In this document: positions 6,289 to 19,451 of the stretch, piece by piece | Numbering within the stretch: position 1 is the stretch's first letter | Layout of the letters: each line of letters begins with the position of its first letter | Origin: Octopus sinensis | Lineage: Eukaryota | Direction: 5' to 3' | DNA: 64,000 nucleotides | NCBI RefSeq assembly: GCF_006345805.1 | Contig: NC_043026.1 | Span: 10,292,001 to 10,356,000 of the forward strand | Program-made: the position numbers and the translations under genes | The notes under the pieces: model-generated | What the model was told of the DNA's origin: nothing | Database searches by the model: none | What the model saw: only the letters and a program-made list of their open reading frames with translations

Positions 6289-7505
6289 CTACCCTTTTCC
6301 TGTCTTCCCTGCATGAATATGTCTGTGTCTTGTTAAGATAGAATTTTGAGAAAATGCTTTACCACAGATATCACAATTATATGGTTTCTCTCCTGTATGA
6401 ATACGTTTATGTGCAGTTAAGTTTCTATTGTCAGTGAATGACTTACCACAGACATCACAGTGATATGGTTTCTCTCCTGTATGAATCAGTTTGTGATTCA
6501 TTAAGTTTCTATTGTCAGAGAATGATTTACCACAGATATTGCAGTGAAATGGTTTCTCCCCTGTATGAACACGTTGTGTATAGTTAAATAATCATTTTTA
6601 GAGAATGATTTACCACAGATGTCACAATGATATGGTTTCTCTCCTGTATGAATACGTTTATGTGCAGTTAAGACACAATTATATGTGAATGATTTACCAC
6701 AGATATCGCAGTGAAATGGTTTCTCTCCTGTGTGAATACGTTTGTGTATAGTTAAATTAGAGTTTTTAGAGAATGATTTACCACAGATTTCACAATGATA
6801 TGGTTTTTCTCCTGTATGAATACGTTTGTGATTCATTAAGTTTCTATCGTCAGAGAATGATTTGCCACAGATTTCACAATGATGTGGTTTCTCTCCTGTA
6901 TGAAAACGTTTGTGTCTAGTTAAGACATTATTATGAGAGAATGATTTACCACAAATATCACAATGATATGGTTTCTCTCCTGTGTGAATACGTCTATGTA
7001 CAGTTAAGACACAATTATAAGAGAATGATTTACCACAGATATCACAGTGATATGGTTTCTCACCTGTATGAGTACGTTTGTGGGCAGTTAAGATTCTATT
7101 TTCAGAGAATGATTTACCACAAATGTCACAGTGATATGGTTTCTCACCTGTATGAGTACGTCTGTGTATAGTTACATGACCAATGTTAGTAAATGATTTA
7201 CCACAGATATCACAATTATATGGTTTCTCTCCTGTATGAGTACGTTTGTGAGCAGTAACTTCACCACTCTGAGAGAATGATTTACCACAGATATCACAAT
7301 GATATGGTTTCTCACCTGTATGAGTACGTTTGTGAGCAGTAACATCACCACTCTGAGAGAATGATTTACCACAGATATCACAATGATATGGTTTCTCTCC
7401 AGTGTGAATACGTTTGTGTCTAGATAAGTAACTACTGTGAGAGAAGGAATTACCACAGACATCACAATGATAGGGTTTCTCCCCCATATGAATACGTTTG
7501 TGCAT
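6289..7505 (-). pseudogene. C2H2 ZNF gene U1, 14 fingers if one 1-bp frameshift (~6574) is corrected
   Basis: ORFs 6501-7505 and 6289-6501 join when ACGTTGTG is restored to ACGTTTGTG as in U2/U3. Ends [14 protein letters not shown] acceptor at 7981-7976. The frameshift may be a sequencing error. Confidence 0.85.
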
Positions 7506-10500
7506 AATTAGTTTACTTTCTTTTAAAAAAAGACATCTATAAAGATATCACAGTCACATGATCTAATCACTTCTCTCATGTGTTCAGAAGAAATGAATCA
7601 TACAATTTTTTCTCTCTTCCAATATTTTGCCTCTCAAATCCCAGCTTATATTTTTCTTCTTTTTCTTTTTATACTTTATTTCTTGCAAACAGTTCTTCTG
7701 CTGTATTTATGTCCAGTGTTACTTATGTTTAGCAACACTTCAATTAATTTATCCAACTTCAATCAGCACACAGGCTTCTCTTCTTCACACTCCAGTTGGT
7801 GATGTCCAGAAATTTGGCTAATAACATTTCTTCAGAACAAATGTTTCACAGGAATTCTTCTACAGTTTTGTAAAAGCAATCTGATACATCTGTTTCATAG
7901 AATATTTTCTTTTAGTCTTTAAAACAGGATAGAGTTGAGGGTTCGTCTTCCGTTACACCACTGTCATCTGATGCTCTGAAATTAAAGACAAAGAACAGTG
8001 TCAGATGTAGAGGCTATTTAAAAAAATAAATGATTCATTTCTATAGAGATAATCTGAAGAGATAAACATTTGCCTTAACTGAGCTGGATGCTGACAGCAC
8101 CATAAAGAAGTGCTAACCTCTAAAAGCAGATGGAACATGTGGGTCACCCAGAAAGACAGGCTATGAAGTGCTGAAGAACTTTTCAGGTGAGATGACAAAG
8201 GACCAACATTCCTGGGGCCTTGTTCTACTCAAGAAGATCCACACTTCATAACAGATTTGTTAAGACTCATCCCACTTCTACTTAAAAGCACTTGCGGCCA
8301 TTCCTCATAAAAGTAGCCATGCAATGCCATGTAAAAACGCTGCTACATTCAAATGTCCATGTGGTGCCACATAAAAGCACCCTATGGCACAATATAGCGT
8401 GGTTGGCACTTGGAAAGGCATCCAGTAGAAACCGTGACAATTCAGACTGAAGAAGTTAGTCGGGGAATTTTCACAATGCCGATTTTTGAAATTTTCCGGA
8501 ATCTCCGTATCCGAAAACGGGGATTTTTGGCAAAAAAAAAATTAATTTTCAATAAACAAATTTGGGAGAAAATAGGGGTGGGCATTGTTGGAAGTCTTTT
8601 ATTAATATATTTTATTTCGTTTCCAAGTAGTGTTGTAAACATTAACCAAATAAGGTTTTGGCTTCTAAACATTTCAGTGGTCAGGGTGTCTTTCAGTACA
8701 TTTCTCAAACTAAAACACGCAACAAACGGGGCAACGATGGAGAGTGCAGACGGTAGCTTCCAAAGCTAGAAATAGCAGCTAAATCACACACGTAGCTAGA
8801 AATAACAGCCAAATCTCGCACAAACGAAGGACATCTCTCATTCATAAAACATAGAAGAGAAACAAAGAATTGACGCGCCAAAAACCGAAACGTCTACAGA
8901 ATTAAAAACATTGAATATTTTCATTGTTTAATACTTACGGAACTGTTTCATAAAGGACAGTGTTGTTATGTATGTGTGTGTCTGGTAGTTGAGGAATACA
9001 TTAGAACTATTATAAATGTATTATTAGCTGATTAAGAGAAATTCACGCACCTGTACATTTAACCAGATATCAACGTCAAGCAGGAAGGACGTTTAAACGC
9101 GCATGTGTCGGTAGAAAATAGCGAAGGGAGCTAAGTCTCCTTAAATCAATTGGGTTTAATATCTTGTTTATTTATTTATTATTATTTAATCCAGTTTCAG
9201 CTCACGAGCTGTGGCCATGCTGGGGCACCGCCATTTGGTGTTGCTACAGGATTTTACTTCACGAATGCTTTTTAGCACCTGCCATTTGGTGCATGAGAGA
9301 GTTCGATGCAGCTGCCCTTATTTGCACCTCCTGCCGTGAAGTTGGTTCATCTGGGATACCTGACAGGAAGAGACCCAGTTTTATTTTAAAGATATCTGCA
9401 TCCACCCCATGCAGGTCTCTCAGGTTCTTCAGGAGGATATTGAAGAGATGTGGGCCTCTGAAGCCCAGGCTATCACAGTATCTTGTCCTACATCTTGATG
9501 GCAAATTTGGAGTCCTTGGCACCACGCAGTGGCACACAGTTCTGGCATTTGTGTAACTCTCGATGCCAAAGTCTGGGACAAGTCCTTCTAGGATCTTCCG
9601 GGTGTATATTATTGCATACTCTCTCGTCGATAGCTGGAAATAGTAGCTAAATCTTGCACAAATTATAGACATCTCTCATCGATTGCTAGAAATAGCAGCC
9701 AAATCACGCAAAATTCAAGGAAATCATTCGTTCATAAAACACAGAGGAGAAACAAAGAATCGATGCGCCACAAAAACCGAAAGTCTACAGAATTAAAAGC
9801 ATGGAAGATCTTCGTTGTTTAATACTTAGGGAAATGTTTCATAAGGGATAGTGTTGTTATATGTGTGTGTGTATCTGGTAGCTGAGGAATGCGTTAGAGT
9901 TATTATAAATGAATTATCAGCTGATTAAAAGGAATTCGTTCACAGGACATTTAAGCCATGTGTAACATGAAAATTTGTAGGATAGATGTCCCTACATCAT
10001 GTGTGAGAAAAAGGGCAGGGAACTGGGGAAGGGGATTAAAAATGTAAATAAATACCTGTTGCACAGCCGCCAGCAGGCAGCCCCAGCAAGTTGTTAAGGT
10101 GAGACAGTGTCACACGACAACTTGCTGGGGGTGCCTGCTGGAGCCTTTGCGGCAGGTATTTAAAGAGAAAAATTTGATGAGACGGTCAGTCACCGGCTGA
10201 CACTCGCTGACGATACATCGAAGAAGCCAGGGAAGAGAAGGAAGAAGACATGCACCCAACACCAGAGCTGAAGACACCTCCGAAAGTGGGGGACCCGTCA
10301 CGTCAAGACAGTAGAGGAGTAGGGGCCGAAACCGGGCGTGGTTCCTCCTGATGATGTCTTTAGCTAACTGGAACCTATAAAGGATCTGTTATGGTAGCAA
10401 ACCACGAAACACGGTTGTAATTCCTCAAATAATATAATTGCAGGTTCACGAAATAAATTAAATAACAAAACAAGATATTATTAAAGAATTATTTAACGAG

Positions 10501-18203: not shown

Positions 18204-19451
18204 CTACCCTTTTCCTGTCTTCCCTGTATGAATATGTCTGTGTCTTGTTAAGATAGAATTTTGAGAAAATGCTTTACCACAGATATCACAATTATATGGT
18301 TTCTCTCCTGTATGAATACGTTTATGTGCAATTAAGTTTCTATTGTCAGTGAATGATTTACCACAGATATCACAGTGATATGGTTTCTCTCCTGTATGAA
18401 TACGTTTGTGTTTCATTAAGTTTCTATTGTTAGAGAATGATTTACCACAGACATCACAATGATATGGTTTCTCTCCTGTATGAATCAGTTTGTGATTCAT
18501 TAAGTTTCTATTGTCAGAGAATGATTTACCACAGATATTGCAGTGAAATGGTTTCTCCCCTGTATGAACACGTTTGTGTATAGTTAAATAATCATTTTTA
18601 GAGAATGATTTACCACAGATTTCGCAATGATATGGTTTCTCTCCTGTATGAATACGTTTATGTGCAGTTAAGACACAATTATAAGAGAATGATTTACCAC
18701 AGATATCGCAGTGAAATGGTTTCTCTCCTGTGTGAATACGTTTGTGTATAGTTAAATTAGAGTTTTTAGAGAATGATTTACCACAGATTTCACAATGATA
18801 TGGTTTCTCTCCTGTATGAATACGTTTGTGATTCATTAAGTTTCTATCGTCAGAGAATGATTTACCACAGATTTCACAATGATGTGGTTTCTCTCCTGTA
18901 TGAAAACGTTTGTGTCTAGTTAAGACATTATTATGAGAGAATGATTTACCACAAATATCACAATGATATGGTTTCTCTCCAGTGTGAATACGTCTATGTG
19001 CAGTTAAGACACAATTATAAGAGAATGATTTACCACAGATATCACAGTGATATGGTTTCTCACCTGTATGAATACGTTTGTGGGAAGTTAAGATTCTATT
19101 TTCAGAGAATGATTTACCACAGATGTCACAGTGATATGGTTTCTCACCTGTATGAGTACGTCTGTGTATAGTTACATGACTAATGTTAGTAAATGATTTA
19201 CCACAGATATCACAATTATATGGTTTCTCTCCTGTATGAGTACGTTTGTGAGCAGTAACATCACCACTCTGAGAGAATGATTTACCACAGATATCACATG
19301 GATATAATTTCTCTCCAGTGTGAATACGTTTGTGTCTAGATAAGTAACTACTGTGAGAGAAGGAATTACCACAGACGTCACAATGATAGGGTTTCTCCCC
19401 TGTATGAATACGTTTGTGCATAATTAGTTTAATTTCTTTTAAAAAAGACAT
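18204..19451 (-). CDS. C2H2 ZNF protein U3, 415 aa, 14 fingers
   Basis: Uninterrupted ORF, all fingers canonical; acceptor at ~19894. Confidence 0.95.

Follow-up and report, generated by a model that had tools for sequence, protein, structure and literature searches.

Zinc-finger arrays and tandem units in the window

The stretch of DNA analysed here, called the window throughout, comprises 64,000 nucleotides of the Octopus sinensis genome (NCBI RefSeq assembly GCF_006345805.1, contig NC_043026.1, positions 10,292,001 to 10,356,000 of the forward strand) and holds a cluster of C2H2 zinc-finger (ZNF) genes, of which four copies, U1 to U4, lie in a series of tandem units (Table 1). Tandem Repeats Finder located eight arrays with a period of 84 bp in the window, which is free of N and has a G+C content of 33-48% in 2-kb windows, mostly 35-43%. 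The copy numbers of the 84-bp period were 14.2, 13.2 and 14.2 for the U1, U2 and U3 arrays, and a regular expression for C-X2-C-X12-H-X3-H matched 106 canonical fingers across all eight. In a Pfam search, the U3 open reading frame (ORF) yielded 14 stretches of zf-C2H2 (E=3e-73) along with zf-H2C2_2 (E=1e-130), and the linker consensus T-G-E-K-P was found in 72-76 of 81 fingers. With tandem fingers of this spacing, a TGEKP link and a period of 28 amino acids (84 bp), the arrays are of the Krueppel-type C2H2 poly-zinc-finger kind. Scans of the whole window gave no tRNA or Rfam match, and a bacterial promoter and terminator scan downstream of U3 was set aside as irrelevant to a eukaryote.

Table 1. 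Positions of the tandem units, zinc-finger arrays and their parts in the window (aa, amino acids)
Feature	Position	Strand	Description
Unit A	1-6288		partial; own array outside the window
Unit B	6289-11948		carries U1; lacks ~682 bp found in C and D
Unit C	11949-18203		carries U2; mosaic, D-like from 11949 to ~14886, B-like from ~16084 to 18193
Switch zone of unit C	14886-16084		affinity changes from D-like to B-like; putative site of unequal crossover
Unit D	18204-24546		carries U3
Unit E	24547 to ~29830		carries U4; truncated; ~1.26 kb extra insert
U1 array	6289-7505 (~6.3-7.5 kb)	minus	14 finger units, frame broken in finger 10
U1 fused finger	6382-6465	minus	F12 start (YHCDVC) joined to F13 body (TDNRNLTA); 84-bp deletion
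U1 duplicated finger 2	7221-7388	minus	F2a 7305-7388 (QSGDVTA); F2b 7221-7304 (QSGEVTA)
U2 ORF	11949-13112 (array 11.95-13.1 kb)	minus	387 aa, 13 fingers
U2 last finger	11958-12041	minus	hybrid: F13 start (TATCAC) and F14 body (QNSILTR)
U2 finger 1, first zinc-ligand codon	13041-13043	minus	TGT to TTT (Cys to Phe)
U3 ORF	18204-19451 (array 18.2-19.45 kb)	minus	415 aa, intact, 14 canonical C2H2 fingers
U3 fingers	F12 18381-18464; F13 18297-18380; F14 18213-18296	minus	
U3 leader	19452-19893	minus	non-coding, upstream of array, conserved in 7/7 aligned paralogs
U4 array	24547-25822 (24.55-25.8 kb)	minus	degenerate: stop in linker, frameshifts, broken finger, 58-bp remnant
P5 array	33.4-34.5 kb	minus	
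P6 array	40008-41947 (40.0-41.9 kb)	minus	22 fingers, two overlapping ORFs split by 1-bp frameshift near 40856
P7 array	53.7-54.6 kb	minus	
P8 array	58.5-59.6 kb	plus	sole plus-strand array of the 8

The leader upstream of the array is ~440-500 bp long among the aligned paralogs; a tttcag resembling a splice acceptor (19894-19900 in U3) immediately precedes it. All frames of the leader are interrupted by stops and no ORF runs through it, and the surroundings of the start codon look like a decayed finger. No match to KRAB, SCAN, BTB or SET was obtained in the U3 protein or in the unit D ORFs of at least 75 amino acids, a scan that short exons outside these ORFs would escape. The genes thus appear to be fingers-only, with a non-coding leader (~440 nt) and a single exon of 13-14 Krueppel-type fingers. 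Membership in the PRDM9 or KRAB-ZNF families was rejected since SET and KRAB domains were not found in the scanned ORFs. An origin of the paralogs as retrocopies was likewise rejected because the upstream homology ends at a different point in each paralog and has no single sharp boundary.

Unit borders were anchored on the stop-codon motif CTACCC[T/A]TTTCCTGT, which occurs at 6289, 11949, 18204 and 24547. At least 4.5 units of 5.7-6.3 kb are arranged head-to-tail in one orientation, with self-alignment offsets of 5.66, 6.25 and 6.34 kb, and their identity is 93-97% (~96-97.5% outside the arrays). The ~682 bp missing from unit B are absent at the 8452/8448 junction, as compared with 14026-14708 in unit C, and a 5-bp microhomology, TGAAG, is found there.

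The affinities of unit C were determined from the columns in which B and D differ, each scored by which of the two C matches. The left part contained 58 D-like and 5 B-like informative sites, as opposed to 14 D-like and 62 B-like sites in the right part (Fisher's exact p=2e-19), and 7 of these 14 D-like sites cluster in 16475-16644. Over its left 2.9 kb, unit C is ~0.4% divergent from D (~12 substitutions), whereas the units are otherwise ~3% apart. Since C resembles its right-hand neighbour D on the left and its left-hand neighbour B on the right, the pattern is the one expected from one unequal crossover, in which a misaligned exchange between D and B would have converted A-B-D-E into A-B-[D-left/B-right]-D-E. 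Unequal crossing-over seems the simplest reading of unit C, if not its complete history. Same-orientation head-to-tail units and a recombinant unit whose halves match its neighbours are also what characterizes a tandem segmental duplication that grew by unequal crossing-over.

Whole-finger differences and decay among the young copies

For the comparison of U1, U2 and U3 the arrays were cut in the 28-codon register Y-x-C...T-G-E-K-P and aligned finger by finger; a whole-array MAFFT alignment mis-registered one finger, and a manual alignment in unit register was used. An earlier note on this DNA, made from the letters alone, had described near-identical copies that differ by whole 84-bp fingers, and the alignment bears this out: all array length differences among the three copies are exactly 84 bp and in register. 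U2 differs from U3 in exactly three respects, namely one 84-bp deletion, the replacement of a zinc-ligand Cys by Phe in finger 1, and one synonymous TGT/TGC change in finger 10, which amounts to 2 substitutions in ~1.09 kb. The deletion takes the body of F13 (DNRNLIA) and the start of F14, with its breakpoint inside the 18-mer TGTGATATCTGTGGTAAA, common to F13 and F14. U3 has retained both DNRNLIA and NNRNLMK. U1, with ~20 substitutions relative to U3, lacks the NNRNLMK body through a deletion with a breakpoint between nt 13 and nt 31 of the unit, and contains a second copy of finger 2, the two copies differing at 2 of 84 nt. Three helix changes separate U1 from U3: G/S at +2 of F3, A/S at +6 of F4 and V/A at +6 of F5. 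The extra finger 2 and the missing NNRNLMK in U1, the missing DNRNLIA and hybrid last finger in U2, the presence of both bodies in U3, the altered Cys and the helix changes (written NIGH/NISH, LTA/LTS and LTV/LTA) had all been listed in the earlier note and were reproduced here. Three independent in-register 84-bp indels in arrays that are otherwise 98-99.8% identical cannot arise by chance.

The polarity of these events may be read from the other copies. As both U1 and U3 possess the F13 body, its absence from U2 would be a derived deletion that followed the crossover. Likewise, the Cys of finger 1 is common to U1, U3 and U4, making the Phe of U2 the derived state, and the single QSGxVTA finger of U2, U3, U4 and P5 makes the double finger 2 of U1 a derived duplication. 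We infer that U2 was copied from U3 very recently. In the time that ~12 substitutions built up in 2.9 kb between C and D, a whole finger was lost, and two whole-finger events accompany the ~20 substitutions between U1 and U3. For an array, this corresponds to ~0.1-0.5 finger indels per point substitution, or ~250 times the per-base substitution rate per array, values that are based on very few events and are order-of-magnitude estimates at best. The ~250-fold rate is one to two orders of magnitude below the rates from human PRDM9 sperm typing, a comparison made by inference and not by measurement.

The finger-to-finger DNA identity within U3 is 81% on average (range 69-94%), and between neighbouring fingers, exact in-register matches extend over 18-32 bp within the segment encoding the linker and Cys knuckle (H-T-G-E-K-P-Y-x-C-D-I-C-G-K-S-F). 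Both mappable deletion breakpoints fall within such shared runs, here 17-18 bp long, one of them in the 18-mer mentioned above. These runs would permit in-register misalignment during unequal sister-chromatid or interallelic exchange, gene conversion or replication slippage, and a misalignment of this kind would delete or duplicate exactly one finger, with the junction marked by a hybrid finger. U1-U3 record three such events: a duplication and a deletion in U1, and a deletion in U2. Together with the few point changes, the finger events are predicted to alter the string of DNA-contacting residues.

The claim that the copies encode three different recognition codes survives only in part. The predicted contact-residue strings of U1, U2 and U3 do differ, but U1 as assembled consists of ~9 intact fingers followed by a nonsense tail, and the zinc ligand of finger 1 is gone in U2. 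In U1, a 1-bp deletion at 6575/6576 (minus strand) in finger 10, by which one A of CACAAACGT is lost to give CACAACGT, removes the second histidine of that finger and places the last three fingers (6289-6549) in another frame. The U1 ORF (6501-7505, 334 amino acids) ends 27 codons past the deletion, and since the frame is broken after ~10 fingers, U1 is probably a pseudogene. The first ATG is followed directly by T7 in U1 and U4 as opposed to T6 in U2 and U3, which places it out of frame in the former two, so that their ORFs begin at a downstream ATG. This second ATG, that of ATGCACAAACGT (ATTATGCACAAACGT), is invariant in 7/7 aligned paralogs. The earlier note mentions neither the U1 deletion nor the T7 run, nor the fourth copy, U4.

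U4 is clearly degenerate. Five of its middle fingers (YSIFLSR, QSINLST, VSTAVAR, QNSVLTA and QSIHLST) have no counterpart in U1-U3, and their nearest relatives are in P6 and P7 (75-80 of 84 nt). The U4 leader, which adjoins the array, has 97-99% identity with that of the other units, and the aligned array columns are ~13-19% divergent. This suggests that the middle block may have been replaced through exchange with a paralog outside the window. Only U3 is fully canonical, and the pattern, as judged from these reading frames, would fit decay in a birth-and-death process at least as well as adaptive recoding.

We also calculated substitution ratios between U1 and U3 with the Nei-Gojobori method. 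The ratio of non-synonymous to synonymous rates (dN/dS) was 0.30 overall and 0.22 outside the four contact codons, with 9 synonymous and 11 non-synonymous changes in a sequence in which ~20% of the sites are synonymous. This indicates that at least one of the lineages has probably been under constraint since U1 and U3 split. In the contact codons (-1, +2, +3 and +6) there were 3 replacement and 0 synonymous changes. The check for selection at helix positions that the earlier note had proposed gave no significant signal (3 of 11 replacements in 15% of the sites, p=0.22), the tests being underpowered, and positive selection at the contact residues was not retained as an explanation. Across 81 non-redundant fingers the entropy was 3.2, 2.6, 3.0 and 2.8 bits at positions -1, +2, +3 and +6, and <0.9 bits at core scaffold and linker residues; third codon positions of the scaffold were almost invariant. 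This is the classic pattern of concerted evolution with helix diversification and is not peculiar to this locus.

A separate observation concerns the junction between fingers 1 and 2 (19340-19312 in U3 and 7424-7396 in U1), where 4 nucleotide differences fall within 9 bp: U1 has GAGAAACCATATCAT, whereas U2 and U3 have GAGAAATTATATCCA (EKP-YH versus EKL-YP). Elsewhere, YPC is found in P5 and P6, and EKP in U4 and P5. It seems that each lineage acquired its own two-base change, or that a small conversion tract is involved.

Explanations for the finger differences

We consider it probable that the locus represents a young, lineage-specific tandem amplification within an octopod C2H2 cluster, shaped by unequal crossing-over, by in-register gain and loss of fingers, and by decay. 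The units would multiply by unequal crossing-over, with C assembled from the left part of D and the right part of B, and the net process would be one of birth and death, in which U1 was frameshifted, U2 lost a zinc ligand, U4 became a pseudogene and U3 is left as the sole fully canonical copy. Several points weigh against this account. The segment of unit C between 15.1 and 16.1 kb contains many private differences, mixed affinities and a 52-bp repeat (15873-15983), and the D-like patch at 16475-16644 suggests an added gene-conversion tract; the history of unit C has thus likely gone beyond one clean crossover, with an overlay of gene conversion. Crossover, gene conversion and replication slippage give similar end products and cannot be told apart, and both the number of units and the finger counts are read from one assembly. 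The intact copies are predicted from their sequence to be expressed DNA-binding proteins, and an identical or near-identical protein is absent from the public collections searched.

Errors in the assembly were weighed as another source of the differences. Unit C could have been added falsely by an assembler going round the repeat once too often, or it could represent the alternative haplotype of D, set in tandem; some small differences, namely the 1-bp deletion in U1 and T6 versus T7, could be consensus errors. The ~0.4% divergence of the left part of C from D is within the range of heterozygosity. The switch from D-like to B-like sequence coincides with the stretch of closest resemblance between B and D (D coordinates 21.3-21.6 kb, with 1-2 differences per 300 bp), where an assembler could jump between units, and the frameshift of U1 comes down to one A missing from a short run of A. 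However, the window contains no N, private substitutions occur in either half of unit C, the middle of which is divergent, and the units are set apart by large indels of their own (682 bp, 1.26 kb and the 1,984-bp transposon). The collapse of an 84-bp repeat would also be an atypical error between fingers as different as F13 and F14 (61/84 identical; ~81% for fingers on average); adjacent fingers are just 73-90% identical, so that the finger indels are unlikely to be collapse errors. The three in-register events are distinct and affect three distinct fingers, and the distribution of T7 (U1 and U4) and T6 (U2 and U3) agrees with the relatedness of the copies. An artefact is very unlikely in our view. 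If C were nevertheless the haplotype of D, the finger missing from U2 would be an allelic polymorphism, which would favour the idea of the earlier note. That idea was that the arrays behave like a coding minisatellite, and the hybrid junction fingers agree with it insofar as they point to in-register exchange or slippage between neighbouring 84-bp units; with repeat units just ~81% identical, however, the arrays are far from the homogeneity of the PRDM9 type. The adaptive version holds that rapid change of DNA specificity is selected (an arms race with octopod transposons being one example) at a hypermutable, polymorphic and PRDM9-like locus. It would account for the ~0.1-0.5 whole-finger indels per point substitution, for the replacements at +2, +3 and +6 in contact codons that lack synonymous changes, and for contact positions that are hypervariable across the cluster while scaffold third codon positions are nearly invariant, and co-evolution of ZNF genes and transposable elements (TEs) has been proposed for octopus (PMC10547256, PMC12513265). 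On the other hand, the enrichment at contact codons is not significant (3/11, p=0.22), three of the four young copies are damaged by a frameshift, a lost zinc ligand or stops, the unit identity of 81% is well under that of PRDM9-type arrays, and the differences among U1-U3 are between paralogs in one assembly and are not population data. We regard adaptive recoding as improbable, and the chance is slim that an effector-less invertebrate locus is a true hypermutable coding minisatellite, with polymorphic finger number, with U2 and U3 perhaps allelic, and with binding retuned to young octopod transposons or neural targets.

At the other extreme, all four young copies may be dead relics of an amplified pseudogene or satellite-like block, the finger differences being neutral debris without a recognition code. 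U1, U4 and P6 are disrupted, the first ATG varies among the copies, neither an effector domain nor an upstream coding exon was found in the scanned unit D ORFs of at least 75 amino acids, and public data gave no annotated protein that matches. Yet the ORFs of U2 and U3 (387 and 415 amino acids) have kept the canonical C-X2-C-X12-H-X3-H spacing, synonymous changes have exceeded the neutral expectation since the split of U1 and U3 (dN/dS 0.30), and the ATG of ATGCACAAACGT is the same in 7/7 aligned paralogs. For the set of four copies this explanation is unlikely, while for U1, U2 and U4 purely neutral decay is a serious alternative.

Related zinc-finger systems and other elements of the window

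C2H2 zinc-finger genes have reportedly expanded in cephalopods, octopods included, as described by Albertin in 2015. Protein searches of public databases gave no close match. The U3 protein gave generic matches of ~55% identity, mostly to vertebrates; a phmmer search against 1.84 billion representatives gave 196,639 hits to giant poly-zinc-finger proteins, none of them close. A short C-terminal query matched Octopus proteins at no more than 68% identity, none of which proved orthologous to any array in the window by tblastn, and look-ups of the exact U2, U3, P5, P7 and P8 proteins found no record.

In vertebrates, young ZNF paralogs are well documented to gain and lose fingers. In primate KZNF genes, duplication and deletion of fingers has been termed the commonest path of divergence (PMC3126818), and, for close paralogs, Kauzlaric et al. 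have described the finger-coding sequence as "drifting and shifting" (PMC5363842). The locus resembles the vertebrate KRAB-ZNF clusters of primate chromosome 19 and of mouse in its tandem segmental duplication and frequent pseudogenes (PMC3126818, PMC5363842), as well as in young paralogs and orthologs whose divergence is mainly a matter of 84-bp fingers gained or lost in frame and of altered contact residues. Unlike them, it has no detectable KRAB, SCAN or BTB exon and consists of a fingers-only ORF behind a non-coding leader. As octopods are an invertebrate lineage, the expansion is independent of that of the vertebrate KRAB-ZNF genes. With PRDM9 (PMC3890296) the locus shares the 84-bp unit, in-register copy-number indels and variation of contact codons over a conserved scaffold. 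This likeness is confined to the mode of mutation, since PR/SET, KRAB and SSXRD are missing and the units are ~81% identical; moreover, the comparison here is of paralogs within one assembly and not of population alleles. Whole-unit, in-register length change is thus a property that the arrays have in common with coding minisatellites, whereas homogeneity of the units (81%, range 69-94%) is not.

Octopod genomes are established to contain expanded C2H2 genes in tandem clusters (PMC12513265, PMC9795677, PMC10547256), and the locus is alike in its many tandem genes, its repeat- and AT-rich surroundings and the Octopus-type LINE (long interspersed nuclear element) fragments nearby. In the portions searched, the cephalopod papers (Holzinger 2025, PMC12513265; Jiang 2022, PMC9795677; Wells 2023, PMC10547256) deal with expansion at the gene level, expression and predicted TE binding; finger-level indels and recombinant units are not treated in these portions, and the searched text of PMC12513265 makes no mention of "unequal", "gene conversion", "exon" or "positive selection". 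Such expansions are seen here at a finer grain, down to finger-level indels and a recombinant unit. The locus displays the ordinary evolution of such gene families, that is, birth and death with in-register finger exchange in a young octopod array. As a fine-grained example it introduces neither a new principle nor a new kind of biology, but it provides a clean and datable snapshot of how the cephalopod zinc-finger repertoire diversifies: one unequal crossover would have made a new copy, and by ~0.4% divergence this copy had lost a finger and a zinc ligand. The mechanisms of the vertebrate KZNF clusters would then operate in the independent octopod expansion too, and the copy-specific junction sequences are usable for tests of expression and polymorphism.

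Other arrays in the cluster bear similar marks. P6 contains an internal duplication of a block of five fingers (420 bp, ~85% identity), and P8 opens with two fingers of identical helix, SNSGHVTV, its first finger being duplicated. Together with U4, these arrays appear to display the same dynamics of finger exchange elsewhere in the cluster, at other scales.

The window also contains several transposon-like elements and repeats. In unit A only, a 1,984-bp insertion (1234-3217) has perfect 28-bp terminal inverted repeats (GGTTAATATAGGGCGTAACAAATATCAG) and is bordered by an 8-bp target-site duplication, GAAAATAG (1226-1233 and 3218-3225). The empty site is preserved in unit C (~14825-14834), there is no second copy in the window, and an internal tandem repeat of 151 bp extends from 1283 to 1686. 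By these features the insertion looks like a young non-autonomous hAT-like DNA transposon. A LINE reverse-transcriptase fragment on the minus strand (60134-60697) was most similar to proteins of Octopus sinensis and O. vulgaris, with 74-82% amino acid identity, the next matches being at ~54% or lower. Fragments resembling elements without long terminal repeats (non-LTR), at 9259-9672, 21863-22261 and 23106-23593 (all minus strand), are found again in each tandem unit and gave no Pfam match. The intergenic part of unit D may contain LINE-tail-like fragments, as read from motifs and not from a database match.

Satellite-like repeats are present between the ZNF genes at 39065-39181, 42581-43411, 45014-46121, 47809-48284, 50152-50506, 51196-51547 and 52884-53097. 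They include a 185-bp repeat in 4.5 copies (97% matches), a 52-bp repeat in 21 copies and a 62/63-bp repeat at several sites; their derivation from short interspersed nuclear elements (SINEs) or other transposons is only a guess. The 97/195-bp repeat at 50152-50506 is related to the 185-bp repeat.

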